Positions 3,001-34,843 of a stretch of 64,000 nucleotides of DNA are shown piece by piece (within the stretch, counting starts at the first letter, position 1; each line of letters starts with the position of its first letter). The notes beneath the pieces are model-generated. The model saw only the letters and a list, made by a program, of their open reading frames with translations, did not search any database and was not told the origin of the DNA. The position numbers and the translations under genes are program-made. Source of the DNA: Heteronotia binoei (Eukaryota). The stretch lies in contig NC_083237.1 in assembly GCF_032191835.1 (NCBI RefSeq), positions 9,610,001 through 9,674,000 on the forward strand. Reading direction: 5' to 3'.

Positions 3001-6000
3001 TAAAAAAGGGACAGAAGCAAGTGTGGACAAATATCAGACAGAACCCTGTCTAGTCTTTTTCTAACTCTTTAATGCTCTCCCTTGAGATTATGAGGCATAT
3101 GCTAACATTAAGTGACATTGTACAGTCCATTGCTTCCAACACATATCTTATGTATCAGATGAAGGCAGAGATATGATTGCCCTAAAATAGTAATTCTTAC
3201 CAGAAGAACCACTTTGAATGAAAAGTTGCTTCAGACAAGGGCGACATTAGCAAATCGCTTCTTCATGACTATTCCTCTGAAATGTTACCACATTTGCATA
3301 ATCTAAAAAAAAAAAAAAATACAGCCAGAACATCCTTGAGTTGAAATTTTGTCAACCTGAAAATTCCTTCTGGACATTTTCTTTCCACAAACACATGGAA
3401 ACACACCAAATTTCTTCCTGGGTCTTCTCTAAGATACCTTCACATTTCCTTTTAGCTTACATATGGCCCACTTACTCAAGAGGAGAATGACTTGATACAG
3501 TCCCCTTCCTTTTACTCCATGGTGCCAAATGAAAACCAGCAGTATATGGGCATTGTTCAGTTGCTCCAGCATTTTGGATGGACGTGGGTTGGGCTTTTTG
3601 TTGTGAATGATGACAGTGGAGAACATTTCTCACAAGTATTGGGGCCACTGCTTTTCCAAAATGGTATTTGTTTGGCCTTTATACAAAGAATAAATAACCA
3701 AGCCCACTGGAATAAGCTTGAAGAAGTTCAGGATTTAATTTCAAATGTATTTCAGTCTTTAGCTGATAGTAAGGCTAGAACATTTATCCTCTATGGAGAA
3801 TCTAGAGCTATTATTTCACTGATCACCCTTATAGCTCTAGGAGATTTTGAATGGGAAGAAAATGCATCATTAAGAAAGGTGTGGATCACAACAGCACAAG
3901 CGGATTTTGCAATGGTCGCCATCCAATGGGACTGGAATTATGAATTCTTCCATGGGGCCATTTCCTTCACAGTTCATGCAAAGGAGCTTCCAGGCTTCCA
4001 GAAATTTCTTCAAGATATCAGACCTGATTGGACTAAACAAGACAGTTTTTCCAAGGAATTCTGGGAGCAAGCATTTGCCTGCTCTTTTCTAAATTCCAGT
4101 GATGACATGGATGCCTACAAAGCATGCACTGGGGAGGAGAAGCTAGAGAGTCTCCCAGGTCCTGTTTTTGAAATGCACATACTTGGCCACAGCTATAGCA
4201 TCTATAATGCTGTCTATGCCATAGGCTATGCTCTGCATGCCATTTACGAGTCTCGATACAAACACAGAGAAGTGGTTGGTGGAAAAAGAGTTGACCTTCA
4301 AGATATACAGCCCTGGCAGGTAACATTTTCACAATTCCATTGCACACCCCCCCCTTTTGTTCCTTATATGGGAAGACAACACGGTATTCTGGTAGGGCTG
4401 CCACCATCCCACTGGTTCCTGAGGATCAGCTGGCCAGCAAGGGGATAGGAGGGAGGCCTAGGTTACATCACTAGCAGCATGTTGATGTCACTTCTGGCTT
4501 GTACTGGAAGTAATGCCATCATATCAGCAATGTCACAGTGACACTCTGGGATCTGGGAAAAAATTCTATGGTAGAAGTCATTTTTATGATGACATTATGA
4601 AGTAATGTCATCAAGTTATGACTTTATAATAAAGCTCTCACATCAGGGCAAAAGCTCTATCATAAAAATGACTTCTACCATAGAATTTTTTCCCAGATCC
4701 CAGAGTGTCACTGTGGCATTGCTGATAGGATGGCATTACTTCCAGTACAAGCCAGAAGTGATGTTGCCACATTGCCAGCAATGTCGTCTGGGTCTCCCTT
4801 CTGCTCCTAGTAAGTACCCCCCCCCTTCCACCTGGCAACCCTATATTGTGAGAAAAGGAACCTATGCCTTATTGCAATGTCGCATTGTCGATCTATCCAG
4901 TTCAGCATGGTAAGTTGCTATTAACTTTCTAGAATCTCGTGTGAAGAAAGATTGTTCCACCCAGCATCTTCTCTGCAGTTCTTTTCGCTGAAGTGTAGTG
5001 CTCTATCAACAAGCCATAGTTCTGCCTCCTTTTCTTTCTACTCAACTGAGTCAAATCAAAATGTAGACCTGATGATTATGATGGTGCAGTCTTTTTTGTT
5101 TGTTTGTTTTTAGAGGTTGGATCGGATCGGGAGAAGTGTTGGGAGTGTGAAGCAGGAGAACTTTGTGTGTTCTCAGCCCCCATTATTGTACTCAATCACT
5201 TGAAGGTTAAGCAGGGCTTTCGTTGTAGCAGGAACTCCTTTGCAAATTCCAATCCTCCTGGAGCTTACAGGGCTCTTAGTATAGGGCTTACTTAAGCTCC
5301 TGGAGGATTGGCTACATTAGTGAGGTGTGGCCTCATATGCAAAGGAGTTCCTACTACAAAAAAGCCCTGAGTTTAAGTCTTCTAGCATAGCAGACTTGCT
5401 TGTTCTGCAGTCAAGTTTGATGCAGTTGAAAGAACTAGGGTTGCCGAGTCCAATGCAAGAAATATCTGGGGACTTTGGGGGTGGAGCCAGAAGACTTTGA
5501 GGCGGAGCCAGGAGACATTGAGGTGGAGCCAGGAGCAAGGGTTTGACAAGCATAACTGAACTCCAAAGGGAGTTCTGGCCATCACATTTAAAGGGATCAC
5601 ACACCTTTTAAATGCCTTCTTTTTGTTGGAAATAATGAAGGATAGGGGCACCTTCTTTTGTGGCTCATAGAATTGGACCCCCTGGTCCAATCTTTTTGAA
5701 ACTTGGAGAGCATTTTGAGGAGAGTCATCAGATGCTATGCTGAAAATGTGGTGCCTCTATCTCAAAAAACTGCCCTTCCAGACCCCTAGATACCCATGGA
5801 TCAATTCTCCATTTTACCCTATAGGAATCAATCTCCATAGAGAATAATGGAGTGCCCAGCAGACATCCCCCCCTTGCTTTCTGATGACCCTGAAGTGGGG
5901 GGAGGGCCTCCAAACCAGGGGATCCCCTGCCCCCACCTGGGGATTGGCAACCCTAGAAAGAACAGCATAGTTTATCTACATGATTTTCTTTTTAAAAACA

Positions 6001-11144: not shown

Positions 11145-11343
11145 TTCTTCTTCTTCTTCTTCTTCTTCTTCTTCGTAGCAGGAGCTCCTTCACATATTAG
11201 ACCACACCTCCTTGATGTAGCCAATCCTCCAAGAGCTTACAGGGCTCTTCTTACAGGGCCTACTGTAAGCCCTTAGAGGATTGGCTACATCGAGGAGGTG
11301 TGGCCTAATATGCAATGGAACTCCTGTTACAAAACGAGCCCTG
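10835..11343. mobile_element. hAT MITE (CAGGGC family) with a tRNA-SINE (about 10841-11173, +) nested in its left TIR
   Basis: Perfect 8-bp TSD CTTACATG at 10827-10834 and 11344-11351; SINE with (CAT)n(CTT)n tail begins directly after CAGGGC. Confidence 0.85.
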
Positions 11344-11782
11344 CTTACATGTTACCATAAAGGGATACACATACCTGTATGCCCCAGCCCTATCCTTCTC
11401 TATTATCACTGCCTTGATGATTTTTTAAAAGGGTGAGGATCAACCCATGCTGGTTGCCCTGGGCTTCTGGGAGGAAAAGTGCGATAGAAATGTGATCAAA
11501 CATTTAAGCAAAGAGATACAGGCAGGGATGGAATTTGTAGGGATATGGAGAACATTGCAGCCGAAAACATTGAATTCAGGAGGGGTGTGTGAGAGAGGAT
11601 CGTTTGATGCATGGTCAGATTCAGTGCAGTCAGCATAGTCTACCCTTCCTCTTTCTGTTTATAGAGTGTCTGCAGCCAATGACGGTTAGAAACTGCAGCC
11701 CCGGTGCAAGTGAACGTTAGCGCCTAGTAAGCCACAAGCTCATAGCCCTCTTTTTGAAGACATGCCGAGTCACCGTACCCCT

Positions 11783-11810
11783 GGTATTTGTCCTGCTTTT
11801 GTACACTGTG
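11783..11810 (-). other. Recombination signal sequence of VH-1 with a 12-bp spacer
   Basis: Minus strand: heptamer CACAGTG (11810-11804), 12-nt spacer (11803-11792), nonamer ACAAATACC (11791-11783). Confidence 0.9.
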
Positions 11811-12857
11811 CACTTCGAGCACAGAAGTACATGCCGGAGTCTCCTGTCTGCATGCCTCTCATCTCTAAATAAAGCTGGTTCTTGGAAGTGTCTCTGGAGA
11901 TGGTGAGGCGATTTTGCCGGGAGCCAAGGTAGTGCTTTCTGTCATCCCAAAACACGAGACACAGCCATTCCAGGCCTTTCCCTGGGGACTGACGAACCCA
12001 GCCCACTGAATCCCCACTGTCAGTGAGGGAGAATCCATAAATGTAGCAGGTGAGCTGAAGGGTCTCCGATGGTCTGAGCTGCACTGACCCAAACTGCTTC
12101 AAGTCCACTGCAGACTGGACCCCTGGAAAGATAGAGGATGATGAAGAAGATATTGGATTTGTACCCCACCTTTCACTCTGAATCTCAGAGTGGCTTACAA
12201 CCTCCTTTACTTTCCTCCCCCACAACAGACACCCTGTGAGGTGGGTGGGGCTGAGAGAGCTCTTCCAGAAGCTGCCCTTTCAAGGACAGCCTCTGCCAGA
12301 GCTATGGTTGACCCAAGGCCATTCCAGCAGCTGCAAGTGGAGGAGTGGGGAATTAAACCCAGTTCTCCCAGATAAGAGTCCACACACTTAACCACTTAGC
12401 AAGAGCTATGGCTGACCCAAGGCCATTCCAGCAGCTGCAAGTGGAGGAGTGGGGAATCAAACCCGGTTCTCCCAGATAAGAGTCCACACACTTAACCACT
12501 TAGCAAGAGCTATGGCTGACCCAAGGCCATTCCAGCAGCTGCATGTGGAGGAGTGGGGAATTAAACCCAGTTCTCCCAGATAAGAGTCCACACACTTAAC
12601 CACTTAGCAAGAGCTATGGCTGACCCAAGACCATTCCAGCAGCTGAAAGTGGAGGAGCGGGGAATCAAACCCGGTTCTCCCAGATAAGAGTCTGCGCACT
12701 TAACCACTACACCAAACTGGAAAAGGTCCATTATGAAAAAGACCTGGATCTTAAAAGAAGCAAAAGAGAAACCAGGATGGATGAGGTTGTCTCCTTGAAA
12801 AAGGCACTTACAGGGTGGAACAGTGAACAGAACAAAGGCCAGGAGCACAGCATACAT
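11811..12857 (-). CDS. IGHV: IGHV segment VH-1 (clan II / IGHV2-like); open frame but atypical RSS and promoter
   Basis: Leader exon 12857-12812 ([21 protein letters not shown] donor); V exon 12122-11811 with [31 protein letters not shown]. Intron enlarged to 689 bp by a SINE. Octamer degenerate (plus strand ATTTGTTT at 12973). Confidence 0.93.
12131..12720 (-). mobile_element. tRNA-derived SINE with four tandem 104-bp copies of its 5' part, inside the VH-1 intron
   Basis: AGAGCTATGG recurs at 12298, 12402, 12506 and 12610. Confidence 0.9.
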
Positions 12858-13419
12858 GGTCCCTGCTGGAGGGAAGACAGTGGATGGATGAGTTCCGTTG
12901 ATCTCCAAGTCACACTTTGATTGAAGACAGGATTGTAAAATCCCACAGATAAGAGGAGCCTGGGTGAGGACAATTTGTTTATCCAATCTCTATGTAAATT
13001 GGTATTCAAGGACTGTTACCATGAATGGTGGTGCTGTTGTGAAGTGCTTGTGAGTCAAGGGCCAATCACTGAAGGAAGCTCATGCATTATAGATAAAGAA
13101 TGCCTCAAAACATTTAATTTTCATGTCACACAGCTGTTCTCCTATGGTGGAATATGGACACAGGCATGACAAGCAGCAGTGGGCAGGAGGAGTTTTAGGA
13201 GATTTTTCTGCTTTTTCTTTTCTTCACCATATTGAAGGTGGGCAACATTGATGTCCCTTTTTATCTCCTTCATTCCCTTTTCTTGCCCCAGCCAAGGAAA
13301 GAAAGTGGGGACACAAAGGTGACTGTGAGGAGGTAGGGGCAGTGGCTTCCATACCTGCTCAGTATTCAGCAGTGTCTGCTCGATGGTTCCAAGTCTGTCA
13401 TGGTGAGGAAAAGTGACTC

Positions 13420-15092: not shown

Positions 15093-15131
15093 GGTTTTTG
15101 CCTGGCTTCAGATTCACTTCCCCTCACCATG
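15093..15131 (-). other. RSS of VH-2: 23-bp spacer, defective heptamer
   Basis: Heptamer CATGGTG (15131-15125), 23-nt spacer, nonamer GCAAAAACC (15101-15093). Confidence 0.88.
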
Positions 15132-17143: not shown

Positions 17144-18883
17144 CCTGGGACCCTGCCACAAATAAAGGTAAAGGATACCAATTTTTATCAGTCACAGAGC
17201 TGAATAACATAGAAACTCCTTTAACTAAATCCTCATTTTCTGAGACTTGCTTCCACTTTTATGACTTGACCGTCTAGATTTGATGATGACCTGAGTTCCT
17301 TTTCCCCATCATGAATTTCCATGAGAGTTGGTTATGACTGAAAGAGGTAAATAATTAACTCTATGCCTCTTGAGCAATTCTGCTTTCTCTGCATGTTGGA
17401 AACAAGGGGTAACACTCTGTATCTAGTACATTTTAATCTTGCTCGGTGTATTTCAGAATAGTGCACAGGATTCACAAGGCTGACAGAATATTACAGAATA
17501 GTCCTTGGGTAGTTAAACCCTCGAGGGATTTGTGCAATATAGGCTTGACAGAGGAAATAATCAGCCTTGCCATTAAAACCTCAAGTCAGCATTCTCAGAC
17601 ATATTTTATTATTATCTATGCATTGTGGCCTTTCTTTAGAGAACTGCTGCCCCCTTCTGAGAATAAAGGAAGACAATTTCCTACTTTGGCTTTAAGAATA
17701 TACTAGGAGTAAGGTTTGTTGTGAAGAAAAATACAACAGGCTCTAGAAGGAGGCTCTGGGCGAGTGCTCACCACCCTTGTTGTCTTCCCACCCACCCAAG
17801 TGAAGGCATTGACTCCCCCTGCCTCAAGGAGAGCTGATCTCTGCCATCTAGAGAGCAATTGTAAATCTGAGTGATCTCCAGTGGTTCTCTGTTAAGAAAT
17901 GGTATTGTGCCTGCCTGAAGTCCTATCCCTCCTCAAGCCCCACCCTCTCCAGGCTCCACCCCTTAAATCTCCACGAATTTCTTAACCTGGAGTTGGCAAC
18001 CCTAATTCCTTCTCTTTATCTGCCCCTCTGGCTTTGGGTTTCTATCACCTTCCCCCTCCCTGCAGCCTCTACATAGTAAAAGGACAGTCTTTTTTCACTG
18101 TGCATTGGGGACCAAAGCAGCTTACATCATTCTCCTTTCCCCACTTTGATCTGAACAAGAATTCCATGAGGCAGGTTAGGTTGAAAGTTTGTGACTGGTC
18201 TGAAATCACCCAGTTAGCTTCCACAGTAAGAACCTGTGTCTGGCAGACCCCACTCTGAAGCCCTAACTTGTATGCCCTCCTCAAACTCCACCACAGAATC
18301 TCCAGGAATTTCCCATCAACTTATATTCCATTTACCCCAGCACGCCCCAAATTAAGACACAAGACAGAGGGTTTAATGTTATGTATTCAAATGGTTTATC
18401 AATATCATTGCTTATTATCATAAACTGATGATCACAAAAGTGGGCCATGCTTGACTGCTAACTGTGGCTGCCTTTTATGGGCATGTCCATCATGGCGCCA
18501 ACCTTTGCCAGCCCTTCCACCGCTCTTGTTTATTCTCACCTCCACTATATGCCCAGAGGTGCCCAGCCTCATCCCCATCCCCTGACATACCATGCAGCCC
18601 TTACCAGGTTTGAATAGATGCTGCTCAACACCAAATGTGTTTCTTCTCAATGAACTCAGACTTAGGACATGTGATGGTCTGTCATCACCCAGTGACTCAA
18701 GATGGAGGTAGGGATGGCATTATTAGGGACAGGGAGAATGGTATGGTTATACAAAGACTGAATTCAAGAGGCTGCAGCCAATACTGGTTAGAAACTGTGG
18801 CCAGGCTGGAGTCAAGGATTGCAAGTGGTAAGACACAAGCTCATAGCACTCTGGTTGAAGACATGCTGACTCACCATGCAGCT

Positions 18884-18922
18884 GGTATTTGTCCAGCTCC
18901 CTCATTGCTTTTGCACACTGTG
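18884..18922 (-). other. RSS of VH-3, 23-bp spacer
   Basis: CACAGTG (18922-18916), 23 nt, ACAAATACC (18892-18884). Confidence 0.92.
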
Positions 18923-19393
18923 CTCTTCTGGCACAGTAATAAGTGCCGGTGTCTCCTGCCTCCATGCCTCTCATCTCCAAATAAACCTCGCTTTTGGAAG
19001 TGTCTCTGGAGATAGTGAGCCGGCTTCTCAGGGAGTCCAGGTAGCGCTTGTCATCATCCCAATAGACGAGGCACAGCCACTCCAGGCCTTTCCCTGGGGG
19101 CTGACGGATCCAGCTCACTGCATACCCATAAGAAGTGAGGGAAAACCCAGAAACAGAACAAGTGAGCCGGAGGGTCTCTGATGGCCTCAACTGCACTGAC
19201 CCAGGTTGGCTCAAGATCACTGCAGACTGGACACCTGGAAAGCAGGAATGGAAAAGTCTGTTACCCACAAGAACAACAACATGGCTCTTAGAAGTAGCAA
19301 AAGGGAAACCCAGTTGAATGAGATTATCTCCTCCAAGAGATACTTACAGGGTGGAACAGTAAAGAGCACAAAGGTCAGGAGTACAGAGTTCAT
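18923..19393 (-). CDS. IGHV: IGHV segment VH-3 (clan II / IGHV2-like), apparently functional
   Basis: Leader 19393-19348 ([15 protein letters not shown]); 113-bp intron; V exon 19234-18923 [57 protein letters not shown]; canonical 23-RSS. Confidence 0.95.
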
Positions 19394-19521
19394 GGTCCTT
19401 TCTAGAGGGAAGAAAGAAGGGGGAAATAGAGGAGGAATGAGTGGGGCTGATCTCCAAGTCACACTTTGATTGAAGACAGGACTGAAAAACCCAGTGGATA
19501 AGAAGAGGCTGAGTGAGGATA

Positions 19522-19529
19522 ATTTGCAT
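19522..19529 (-). promoter_or_regulatory. Ig octamer ATGCAAAT of the VH-3 promoter
   Basis: Perfect octamer about 130 bp upstream of the leader ATG, in VH-type orientation. Confidence 0.85.
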
Positions 19530-19988
19530 ATTCAAATTTAATGTAAATTGATATCCAGGACTTATTTTCCATAAAAGGTGATGGTGTCGTGAGATGCTTA
19601 TGAGACAGAGTCCAATCGCTGAATGAAGTTCTTGTGTTCCAAACGAAGTAGGCTTTGGGCCATTTAATTGTTCTATTACACAAACAGCAGCAAAGATCAG
19701 AAAATAAACTGATATATGCCTGATCTGGAACTGAACCACTGGGTACAGGATAAGATGTTTAATTCTGCAACCCCTTCTATTCAGCATTGCTTACTGAATT
19801 TCCTGTATGTTTATTTGCATTTGACAGGGAAGAAAAACAGGTCCCTTTTATATCATTTTTCCCTCTAAAAAGAAAAGGGATCAAAACATTCCCTCAGCTG
19901 CTTGTGAGTACAATTTCCTTTTACAGACTTAATAAGAGTCAGGATCTTCACAAAAGCTTTTTTTTGGGGGGGGGGGGAGGGCTCTAAC

Positions 19989-20171
19989 CAGGGTGCTTTT
20001 TTTGTAGCGGGAACTCCTTTGCATATTAGGCCACAAACCCCTGATGTAGCCAATCTCCTGGAGCTTCCAGGGCTCTTCTTCCAGGGCCTACTGTAAGCTC
20101 TTGGAGGATTGGCCACATCAGAGGGGTGTGACTTAATATGCAAAGGGATTCCTGCTACAAAAAAAGCCCTG
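19989..20171. mobile_element. hAT-type MITE (CAGGG..TTTT family)
   Basis: Perfect 8-bp TSD GCTCTAAC; same family as 5212-5369. Confidence 0.9.
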
Positions 20172-21862
20172 GCTCTAACTGGGATCAACACAAAGTTGGG
20201 AATTTTGAGTCCCACACCATTGATAAAATGGGAACTGAGCAATGGTGTCCCTCTAAGGTTGGGAGCCATAACAACTAGTTGTATAGAGGCGGGATAGAAA
20301 TAACTTAAAGAAACCTAAGCACATCTACAAACAAGTTAGATCCACTAAATTCCCTTGGGCTTACTTCTGAGGAAACACACTTTAGGAATGTGTGCCACAC
20401 AAATGAATCACGCCATCCTGTATCCAATAATCAAATTATTGGCTTCAAGTTAAGCCTTAACTTTCCTGTTGGTGCTTGCTCGTCGTGGAATTCTGGGAGC
20501 AGGAGATGAGTTGACACATTATGGAACACAGGAGACCGGTGTAGTCAGATACGGAGTGAAAAATATGTCTGTTGCTGTCTTTGCCTCTTACAACCAAGAC
20601 ACTGCAGAGACAATGAAGTCCCCCTGGAATTACACCAATCACTATGATTTAACCGTCTTGGCAAAGTTTTGAGTAGCTTAAAAAAAAAAAAAAGAAGAAG
20701 CAACCTGAAGAGTCTATATATAGTTAGGGCATTTGACATCCTGCTTTGATAAATGCCAGACTTGAAAGTGGTGCCAGCGATTCTGATCCTTCTGAAATTA
20801 AAGACATGGAGGATGATACTTGCATTACCCCTTTAGAAGTGTGTTGATGGATCCAGCATCTACCCAAGGAAGGTGAATTCAGTCAAAGTGATGCTATAGA
20901 TAGGGCCCAGGCGAGGCTGCATACAGACCTGGAGTGCTGTCCAGATGCTGAGGCTACTGGTGTTTCTGCTGCTTCTCACTTGCATGGCATGCAGAACAGA
21001 TACAACAAAGTGTCGCATGAAAGATTTTTCTCCCCGTTCCTCATGAGTTCCTCCAGCCAGGTGATCTCCTCATTGGTGAGATGACTTCGCTGATATTTTA
21101 TGATTTTCAATTGTTGTCCTTCAAGGGATATCCTTCTCCAAACTCATTGGATGTGCCACAGTAAGGAATTGCCATTCATGTTCTGCTTTTTATGGCTTTT
21201 TTTGTAGCAGAAATTTTTATGACCATTGTCTTTACCTATAACAGGCTGATCATAGAACCTGTTGGCTTCACCCAGTGAAGCATTTCTCCCTTACAGTCCC
21301 TTTCTGAATCATATTTGCTCTTCTGTGTTTGCAATGTATATGGGCTGTCTTCTTCCACAATAAGAGCAGCTTATATTTTGTTAGACAGGGGATGGGAGTT
21401 GAAATGGAGATGTAGTGCATTTGTTTTTTTAAAGCAACAACTCTGAATGTAGCTAGTTTAGTAGATGGCTTGAATGCACAGTGATGTAAAACATGAAAAG
21501 GGGGATTTTTTTAAAAAAAAAATCAATCTTCAAATGCATATGAAATAATATGTAAATATGCTGAAAAGCTGTGATAAGGACAACCATGTCAAAACCAAAA
21601 ATCTCTGCACAGACTCATTAGGCAACCGTATTTTACATTAATATAAATGTGTTTAAAACCCCCAGAAAAGGTGAGAGTGGGGATGGGTCAATGAATGGAG
21701 AATGGAAGGCGACACTAAAAAGATCAGTGTTGGGGTTCATAATATTACAGAACAGCAGGTCAAGGTCATGGCAGGTTAATTGCCAGGGCACATACCTTAA
21801 CTCAAGACAAGTCCTGGCCCCACTGATGGACCTCATGATGGCACCTGGGTTTTTTAGCCACT

Positions 21863-32843: not shown

Positions 32844-34179
32844 ATCAGACAGATGGAAATCTTCCTCATCCCACTGTTGCCGCATAGTTGAAAATAGTTT
32901 TTAAAAGTATGACGGGAGTCAGATTTTATTATGACAATCAATTGAAGAAGCATTTTAAAGTAGATGCTGAGCTGATATAATTTAGCACAGCTGGTGATGT
33001 CAGGGATATGTGGTGTATGCAAATGAGTCCGGCACCTGTTTTTATACAAAACTAGAATCAATATGTTGGGCTTATTCTAGTAGCCAGCTAGAGTTGCTGT
33101 CTACATCAGTCAATCCAATATACTGTCAAGCATCGGTATTTGTAATAATCAAGCGTTTGTTTAATTCAAAGACTTGTTTTATTTGATAATCCAACACTTG
33201 CTCCAAGGAATGATGCCTTGGAAGTGATACATAGTTTCACACAGCATAGAATCTTAAAGGTTACTTCAAAGGCACAATTGTTGATAACTTCAAAAGCATA
33301 ACATATAGATGTGAATTGCATAGAAGTTTCAACTGGTACTATCAACTATTCATTTGGTCACTACAACGTCTCCTAGTTCCCACAAATTCCATTTCTACTG
33401 ATAAGCCATATGGATGGGAACTCGTGGGAGAGGCATTTTACTTACAAAAACAAGGTTACTTGCATATCCTGAATGACTAAGAACTACCAGGTGGGGTGGG
33501 GGGAAGCTTTGAAGAGGAGCGTTTATGCAGAAAAGGCAGAGAGGGAAAAGGGAGGGGGAACTGAAGAACATAGAATACATATTGATTCAAATATCAGAAA
33601 TAGCATGCTTGACATATACCTGTGAATAATCTATGTGAATGATAAACTGTTAATTAAATCTATGAATGGAATGCGATTAAGGTATGGCAAATGATATCAT
33701 AAGCCCTATGGAAGAGAGAGTGGGAAAGTGTCATATTGACTGGACATTGCATGATTTCTTTTCTTGAAAATGCTTTTTAGGATATTCAAAACCCTTGCAT
33801 CCCATTTGGGATGAATGAGCCTTGTTTAATGTTTGTTTTATTTTATTTTTATTTCTGCCATGGGTGACTTTTCAAAAGCTTGATAAGGTTAGTTTTGTGG
33901 TCTGGCTTTCAGGAGAGATGCTGCCAATTTCTAGAAACCCACCAACCCATCTCATTATAGGTAAAATATGCAAATCCCATCCTACATCAAGAGCAATTTG
34001 AACAGCTTAAGTAGGATTCTTTCCCTCTGCAGTCTCATAGGCAATTTATCTAACAGTCAAAATGGTCCCATCAATGGATGCTTAAATCTCTAAATTTTAG
34101 TTTCCTTTCTTTTATTTTCTTACATTAAAAATACTGCAGATGACCCAGCCTGGAGAGTTTTCATGATCCCGAGAGAGGG

Positions 34180-34218
34180 TTTTTTTGCCTGACTTCAGAT
34201 TAATTTCCTCTCACTGTG
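34180..34218 (-). other. RSS of VH-4: 23-bp spacer, variant nonamer
   Basis: CACAGTG (34218-34212), 23 nt, GCAAAAAAA (34188-34180). Confidence 0.85.
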
Positions 34219-34843
34219 TATCCAACACAGTAATACACAGCAGTGTCTTCGAGTTTCAGGTTCTTCATTTGCAGGTGCAGTAGGCTGTTGGAATTGTCCC
34301 TGGAGATGGTGAACCGTCCTTTCACAGAATCTGAGTAGTAAGTTGCGGAGTCTTGTATGAGGGCTACCCATTCTAGTCCCTTTCCAGGAGCCTGTCTGAA
34401 CCAATCAAAATGGTAGCTGTGGAAGGGGAACGCAGAGCCTTGACAGGAAAGATGGAGAGAGTCTCCAGGCCTCTTCGTATTTCCTCCAGATGCCACCAGC
34501 TGGACTGAATGTGCTGCTGCAGAAAGAAAGNNNNNNNNNNNNNNNNNNNNNNNNNNNNNNNNNNNNNNNNNNNNNNNNNNNNNNNNNNNNNNNNNNNNNN
34601 NNNNNNNNNNNNNNNNNNNNNNNNNNNNNNNNNNNNNNNNNNNNNNNNNNNNNNNNNNNNNNNNNNNNNNNNNNNNNNNNNNNNNNNNNNNNNNNNNNNN
34701 NNNNNNNNNNNNNNNNNNNNNNNNNNNNNNNNNNNNNNNNNNNNNNNNNNNNNNNNNNNNNNNCTCTGTGTTTTATTTAAAAATATAAGCTTACCCCTGA
34801 AAACTGCTACAAAGAAAACTAATTGAAGCAAAAAAATTGGCAT
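34219..34843 (-). CDS. IGHV: IGHV segment VH-4 (clan III-like, paralogue of VH-2)
   Basis: Leader 34843-34795 ([16 protein letters not shown]); V exon 34516-34219 [48 protein letters not shown]. The intron spans an N gap. Perfect octamer at 34966-34959. Confidence 0.9.
34531..34763. other. Assembly gap (N run) inside the VH-4 intron
   Basis: Run of N. Confidence 1.

Follow-up and report, generated by a model that had tools for sequence, protein, structure and literature searches.

VH-1, one of five VH segments in a 64-kb stretch of the genome of Bynoe's gecko (Heteronotia binoei), has a recombination signal (RSS) with a spacer of 12 nt instead of the 23 nt found in other members of its family. 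Comparison with the syntenic orthologue in Gekko kuhli indicates that 11 nt were lost from the spacer in one deletion on the Heteronotia side of the Gekko split. VH-1 is probably an IMGT 'ORF'-class segment that is shut out of V-to-DJ joining and is falling out of use. The stretch analysed (GCA_032191835.1, CM063339.1, about 9.61-9.67 Mb) is called the window below, and positions without an accession are those of the window. Window positions 19230-42133 match CM063339.1:9,629,230-9,652,133 with 100% identity.

Results

The recombination signal of VH-1

V(D)J joining follows the 12/23 rule, and the tetrapod IGH locus is arranged as VH(23)-(12)D(12)-(23)JH. VH-1 departs from this arrangement (Table 1). 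Its heptamer abuts the coding end directly (the V exon ends ...TAC TTC TGT GCT CGA AGT G), and the signal has the elements that define a 12-RSS, namely an abutting heptamer, a spacer of 12 +/- 1 nt, and an A-rich nonamer. The 23-RSS expected at the 3' end of a functional IGHV segment is lacking, the spacer being 12 nt. No substitute nonamer is present at spacers of 22-24 nt, where the match to ACAAAAACC is 1/9. The nonamer in use, ACAAATACC, is native to the family and is common to VH-1, VH-3, and the G. kuhli family members. A search with the pattern heptamer-N(10-25)-ACAAAWACC found only the VH-1 and VH-3 sites in the 64-kb window (0.00 expected from shuffles).

Table 1. Features of VH-1 and of neighbouring VH segments in the window.
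Feature	Position	Strand	Sequence or length	Remarks
VH-1 RSS nonamer	11783..11791	-	ACAAATACC	8/9 to consensus ACAAAAACC
VH-1 RSS spacer	11792..11803	-	TACAAAAGCAGG; 12 nt	
VH-1 RSS heptamer	11804..11810	-	CACAGTG	Perfect consensus, CAC intact
VH-1 V exon	11811..12122	-	312 nt	Open throughout; clan-II/IGHV2-like; Cys23, Trp41, and Cys104 present
VH-1 leader intron	12123..12811	-	689 nt	Donor GTAAGT at 12811-12806; acceptor AG at 12124-12123
tRNA-derived SINE in VH-1 leader intron	12141..12717	-	About 580 bp	Sense; four tandem 104-bp head units
VH-1 leader exon	12812..12857	-		ATG at 12857-12855, split codon at end; intact
VH-1 octamer position	12973..12980	-	AAACAAAT	Two mismatches to ATGCAAAT; not the octamer of a functional IGHV
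VH-2 RSS heptamer	15125..15131	-	CATGGTG	Followed by a 23-nt spacer, then GCAAAAACC
VH-3 23-RSS (comparator)	18884..18922	-	CACAGTG, spacer TGCAAAAGCAATGAGGGAGCTGG (23 nt), ACAAATACC	
VH-3 V exon (comparator)	18923..19234	-		79% nucleotide identity to VH-1 V exon
VH-4 RSS	34170..34218	-	Nonamer GCAAAAAAA at 23 nt or AAAAAAACC at 25 nt	A-run of nonamer 2 nt longer

Origin of the 12-nt spacer

The closest relative of the VH-1 V exon in a protein search was G. kuhli P0001 (78% amino-acid identity). The same search returned no protein from H. binoei itself, and a search with the neighbouring V2R exon returned no second Heteronotia haplotype or species. The G. kuhli locus that contains P0001 (L001; CM122952.1:60,245,114-60,265,749) was compared with window positions 4800-24900 and is collinear with the window from 4.8 to 24.9 kb. 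Collinearity covers V2R exons, the VH-2 orthologue, intergenic DNA, and the promoter, leader, V exon, and 3' flank of VH-1. Because of this synteny, P0001 is taken as the VH-1 orthologue. The two also form a clade in the maximum-likelihood tree (88/85 support), nested within their wider VH family.

The RSS of the orthologue is CACAGTG-TACAAAAGCAATGTGGGGCCAGG-ACAAATACC, with a spacer of 23 nt. Alignment of VH-1, VH-3, and the orthologue has a single gap of 11 columns, in VH-1, which lies wholly within the spacer. Of the 23 ancestral spacer nt, VH-1 keeps the first 10 and the last 2 and has lost the 11 in between, and all 28 retained RSS positions match the orthologue. Provided that the ancestral sequence was like that of Gekko, the edges of the deletion share a 2-nt CA microhomology. 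A 23-nt spacer is also present in all other family members with a recognisable RSS, which are VH-3 and the members at five G. kuhli loci (seven by one count). Because the syntenic orthologue and the other family members have 23 nt, the 12-nt spacer of VH-1 is, on this comparison, derived, by one deletion on the Heteronotia side of the Gekko split.

The preliminary description of this DNA had reported a heptamer and nonamer shared by VH-1 and VH-3, spacers of 12 and 23 nt, an exact loss of 11 nt, and conversion of a 23-RSS to a 12-RSS. Its coordinates and plus-strand strings were correct, the exact loss is confirmed by the three-way alignment, and the polarity, which it had proposed, now follows from the G. 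kuhli orthologue and the other family members. Gene conversion from the 12-RSS of a D or V-kappa segment was considered as a source of the short spacer and rejected, because the 12 nt that remain line up in order with the 23-nt spacer from which they descend.

The syntenic interval in G. kuhli holds no counterpart of VH-3 (window 17700-19750 against L001:4922-6090; no VH match). The interval is about 1.2 kb in G. kuhli and about 2.05 kb in the window. Since VH-3 is the outgroup to the pair formed by VH-1 and P0001, it was probably lost in Gekko.

Coding exons and constraint

VH-1 is not a V pseudogene in the strict sense, as its leader ATG is present and its V exon has no stop or frameshift. 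Changes in the V exon were polarised with VH-3 as the outgroup over 310 compared nt. The VH-1 branch has 22 changes (14 replacement, 8 silent), and the branch of the G. kuhli orthologue has 17 (11 replacement, 6 silent); a second count of 18 on the latter leaves the comparison unaffected. The ratios 14:8 and 11:6 are indistinguishable, and relaxed constraint on the VH-1 V exon is neither shown nor excluded by them. One non-conservative replacement in VH-1, L to R, removes a hydrophobic residue from the SLK-type motif, which is conserved and precedes RLTISRD. Even under neutrality, a frame that has taken about 22 substitutions would stay open with an estimated chance of roughly one in three; its openness is weak evidence of constraint. 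The 28 unchanged RSS positions are also weakly informative; about 2 VH-1-branch changes would be expected there if the RSS had evolved neutrally all along (rough P about 0.1).

Promoter and leader intron

The octamer of VH-3 is intact (ATGCAAAT), whereas that of VH-1 has two mismatches; the octamer of the G. kuhli orthologue is ATGCAGAT and is likewise imperfect. VH-1 also lacks 13 nt between the promoter and the ATG that are present in VH-3 and in the orthologue. Over 246 promoter sites, 22 substitutions fall on the VH-1 branch and 11 on the G. kuhli branch.

The leader intron is about 100 nt long in VH-3 and in the G. kuhli orthologue, and neither contains a SINE. In VH-1 it contains a SINE that is absent from the orthologue and lies 15-18 nt upstream of the V-exon acceptor. 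A TRF array at 12298-12708 gives a 95% match between its head units; elsewhere in the window, copies of the SINE have one head each and measure about 250-290 bp. Each of the four head units has one copy of an acceptor-like site, ...ctcctccacttgcag. At the 5' junction, the first base of the SINE makes an AG at the old intron distance (12718-12717). Use of this AG as acceptor would be predicted to give leader-F-W-C-S-G-stop, with a stop after five codons. The true V-exon acceptor retains a good pyrimidine tract.

Three earlier statements on VH-1 bear on these exons and their flanks. That its frame is intact holds, with the leader ATG present and the V exon open, and the reported mutation of the octamer is evident by comparison with VH-3. 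The statement that the splice sites are intact holds for the donor GTAAGT and the acceptor AG themselves and needs amending for the SINE array just upstream of the acceptor.

A search of indexed public runs with unique VH-1 sequence (V exon, RSS, and flank) listed none. When the intronic SINE was included in the query, the runs returned shared only 8-17% of words and are most likely repeat matches. Three raw RNA runs of uncertain species gave 0 reads on VH-1, a result that bears neither on the deletion nor on expression.

Other RSS lesions in the window

The five VH segments of the window lie on the minus strand at about 11.8, 15.1, 18.9, 34.2, and 36.9 kb, and only VH-3 and VH-5 have a canonical-looking RSS. 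In the VH-2 heptamer the critical third base has changed from C to T and there is one further mismatch; the G. kuhli orthologue of VH-2 has CACAGTG. The VH-4 signal has the lengthened A-run given in Table 1, and the region upstream of VH-4 enters an N stretch at about 34531-34763. The RSS lesions of VH-2 and VH-4 fit ongoing birth-and-death turnover.

Arrangement of VH segments and V2R genes

Plus-strand V2R vomeronasal receptor genes alternate with the minus-strand VH segments in the window. Order and orientation are the same in Heteronotia and Gekko (window 4800-24900 against L001), and this conservation argues that the arrangement is old and not a local accident. In G. kuhli, VH segments of one orientation form a cluster that covers at least 59.78-60.27 Mb (at least 480 kb). 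On the H. binoei chromosome, three other V2R loci (8.58, 11.9, and 18.1 Mb) have no VH, and VH interleaving there is confined to a sub-region somewhere within 8.6-11.9 Mb. At the last of these loci (CM063339.1:18.13-18.15 Mb), two olfactory-receptor (7tm_4) genes flank the V2R gene. The 64-kb window contains no J-like segment; the D-J-C region of H. binoei would be expected on this chromosome at lower coordinates. Literature searches on VH/V2R interleaving in squamates gave nothing relevant.

The segments were also considered as an orphon cluster outside IGH. This appears untenable, given that the two genera have kept the RSS, the promoter, and the orientation and that the G. kuhli cluster is so long.

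One VH protein (P0003) occurs on two G. kuhli chromosomes, at CM122942.1:10.41 Mb (L004) and CM122952.1:59.79 Mb (L005), with no difference in protein or RSS and with V2R neighbours at both places. Both records are flagged UNVERIFIED_CONTAM, and the pair could have arisen in assembly or by a true segmental duplication.

A palindromic, MITE-like element of about 180 bp (gaccacacctcc...ggaggtgtggcc) is repeated in the window at 11167-11347 (downstream of VH-1), 19995-20176 (near VH-3), and 5209-5370 (inside the first V2R gene). Several copies in both orientations are present in the G. kuhli loci.

Discussion

IMGT places in its 'ORF' class those V genes whose frame is open but which are defective in RSS, splice sites, or regulatory elements. 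VH-1 combines an open frame with RSS and regulatory defects. On the comparison with G. kuhli, a single deletion removed 11 nt from mid-spacer of the ancestral VH-1 23-RSS once the Gekko lineage had split off. This length is one helical turn, so the heptamer and nonamer would have kept their phase and a structurally sound 12-RSS would have resulted. Because the 12/23 rule bars pairing of two 12-RSSs, such a signal would not be expected to synapse efficiently with the 5' 12-RSS of D or DJ, and the normal route of V-to-DJ joining would be shut. The promoter would be weakened and the leader intron compromised as well, and VH-1 would most likely add little or nothing to the expressed repertoire. 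It may stand at an early point of birth-and-death decay, with a V exon that has yet to gain a stop. Any residual RAG activity on VH-1 would take the form of a direct, deletional, D-less join to a JH 23-RSS, which is formally its legal partner, and direct VH-to-JH joining would formally be possible. The preliminary description had likewise held that VH-1 is unable to join D and is formally compatible with the JH 23-RSS, as the 12/23 rule supports. Its suggestion that VH-1 may be decaying gains support from the octamer, the 13-nt loss, the excess of promoter substitutions, and the SINE array near the acceptor.

The promoter and intron lesions are the reason why we judge the ORF-class reading most likely, and several observations weigh against the decay that it implies. 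The V exon has no interruption and keeps every framework landmark, and its replacement and silent changes are distributed like those of the orthologue. The retained RSS positions are unchanged, and the acceptor has a good pyrimidine tract. The altered octamer counts for less than it seems to, since the octamer of the G. kuhli orthologue is also imperfect.

A rival reading is a working, non-canonical segment whose 12-RSS would join a JH 23-RSS directly and give a minor D-less class with a very short CDR-H3. In its favour, VH-1 has a perfect heptamer and the family's own nonamer at exactly 12 nt with phasing kept, the retained part of its RSS is unchanged since the Gekko split, and its open V exon has an N:S ratio like that of the orthologue. 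It shares the orientation of the other VH segments, and its RSS would thus be convergent with JH RSSs. Direct VH-to-JH joining is also able to support B-cell development in D-less mice (Koralov et al., 2005; PMC1237122). We nevertheless regard a working segment of this kind as unlikely. The octamer has two mismatches, 13 nt of 5' sequence are lost, and promoter substitutions are in excess. The SINE array, with its acceptor-like sites, lies 15-18 nt from the acceptor, and use of the AG at its 5' junction would lead to a stop after five codons. The L to R change in the SLK motif points the same way. That the 12-RSS is a retained working signal by which D is bypassed, yielding antibodies with a germline-determined, very short CDR-H3, is less likely still. 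Pairing of the VH-1 12-RSS with VH 23-RSSs, with V-V inversion that reshuffles the intervening V2R DNA in lymphocytes, was also raised in the preliminary description; it would be legal under the 12/23 rule, and the canonical 23-RSS of VH-3 is 7.1 kb away. All VH RSSs are co-oriented, though, which leaves inversion as the only outcome, with two V ends joined tail to tail in a useless product, and the nearest neighbour, VH-2, has the defective heptamer CATGGTG. We give this reading hardly any credence.

The 12-nt spacer itself comes from one assembly only. It could reflect an error in assembly, or an allele that is private to, and heterozygous in, the animal sequenced. The 11-nt gap falls neither in a repeat nor in a homopolymer and has clean flanks and a microhomology of 2 nt, unlike usual consensus errors, and the surrounding sequence aligns undisturbed to both the paralogue and the orthologue. 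An artefact or a private allele is thus improbable. An ORF-class segment excluded from V-to-DJ joining, as set out above, is the reading carried forward below.

VH segments with a 12-bp-spacer RSS are already known. In the axolotl, IGHV_034, IGHV_035, and IGHV_055 are apparently functional, have a 12-bp-spacer RSS, and are labelled ORF (PMC9911811). Like VH-1, they are tetrapod VH segments with an open frame, a good heptamer and nonamer, and a 12-bp spacer set against the VH(23)/D(12) arrangement. Unlike them, VH-1 has an origin that resolves to a single 11-nt deletion relative to a syntenic orthologue and a paralogue. It also differs in having promoter and intron lesions and in its squamate host, where the VH cluster is interleaved with V2R genes. 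What is added here is the origin by a one-turn deletion and the regulatory damage that accompanies it.

Segments of the IMGT ORF class in general resemble VH-1 in the open V exon, a V-RS spacer of non-canonical length, and an altered octamer. RSS defects in this class are mostly mutations of the heptamer or nonamer or spacers of off length. In contrast to most ORF-class segments, VH-1 has a spacer that falls exactly on the other legal length. The canonical gecko clan-II VH set used here (VH-3 of the window and G. kuhli P0001, P0002, P0003, P0004, and P0012) shares with VH-1 the family, the heptamer and nonamer, the layout of leader, intron, and V exon, and the interleaving with V2R genes. It differs in its 23-nt spacers and introns of about 100 nt free of SINEs, and the octamer of VH-3 is intact. 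The D-less mouse is comparable to VH-1 in the expected product, a D-less heavy chain. Joining in the mouse is 23/23, breaks the 12/23 rule, and was forced by deletion of D, whereas joining of VH-1 would be 12/23-legal and natural.

If VH-1 is decaying, it would be an ordinary product of birth-and-death evolution, and the value for annotation would be to class it as ORF and not as functional. The RSSs of VH-1 and its orthologue, identical at 28 shared positions and different by 11 nt, may serve as a native gecko substrate pair for spacer-length effects. If VH-1-JH joints were seen in the repertoire, they would be the first natural 12/23-legal bypass of D in a tetrapod IGH locus. A working VH-1 would be a living example of an indel of one helical turn that flips the RSS polarity of a V segment, a step that must have accompanied the divergence of V(12)/J(23) from V(23)/J(12) loci.
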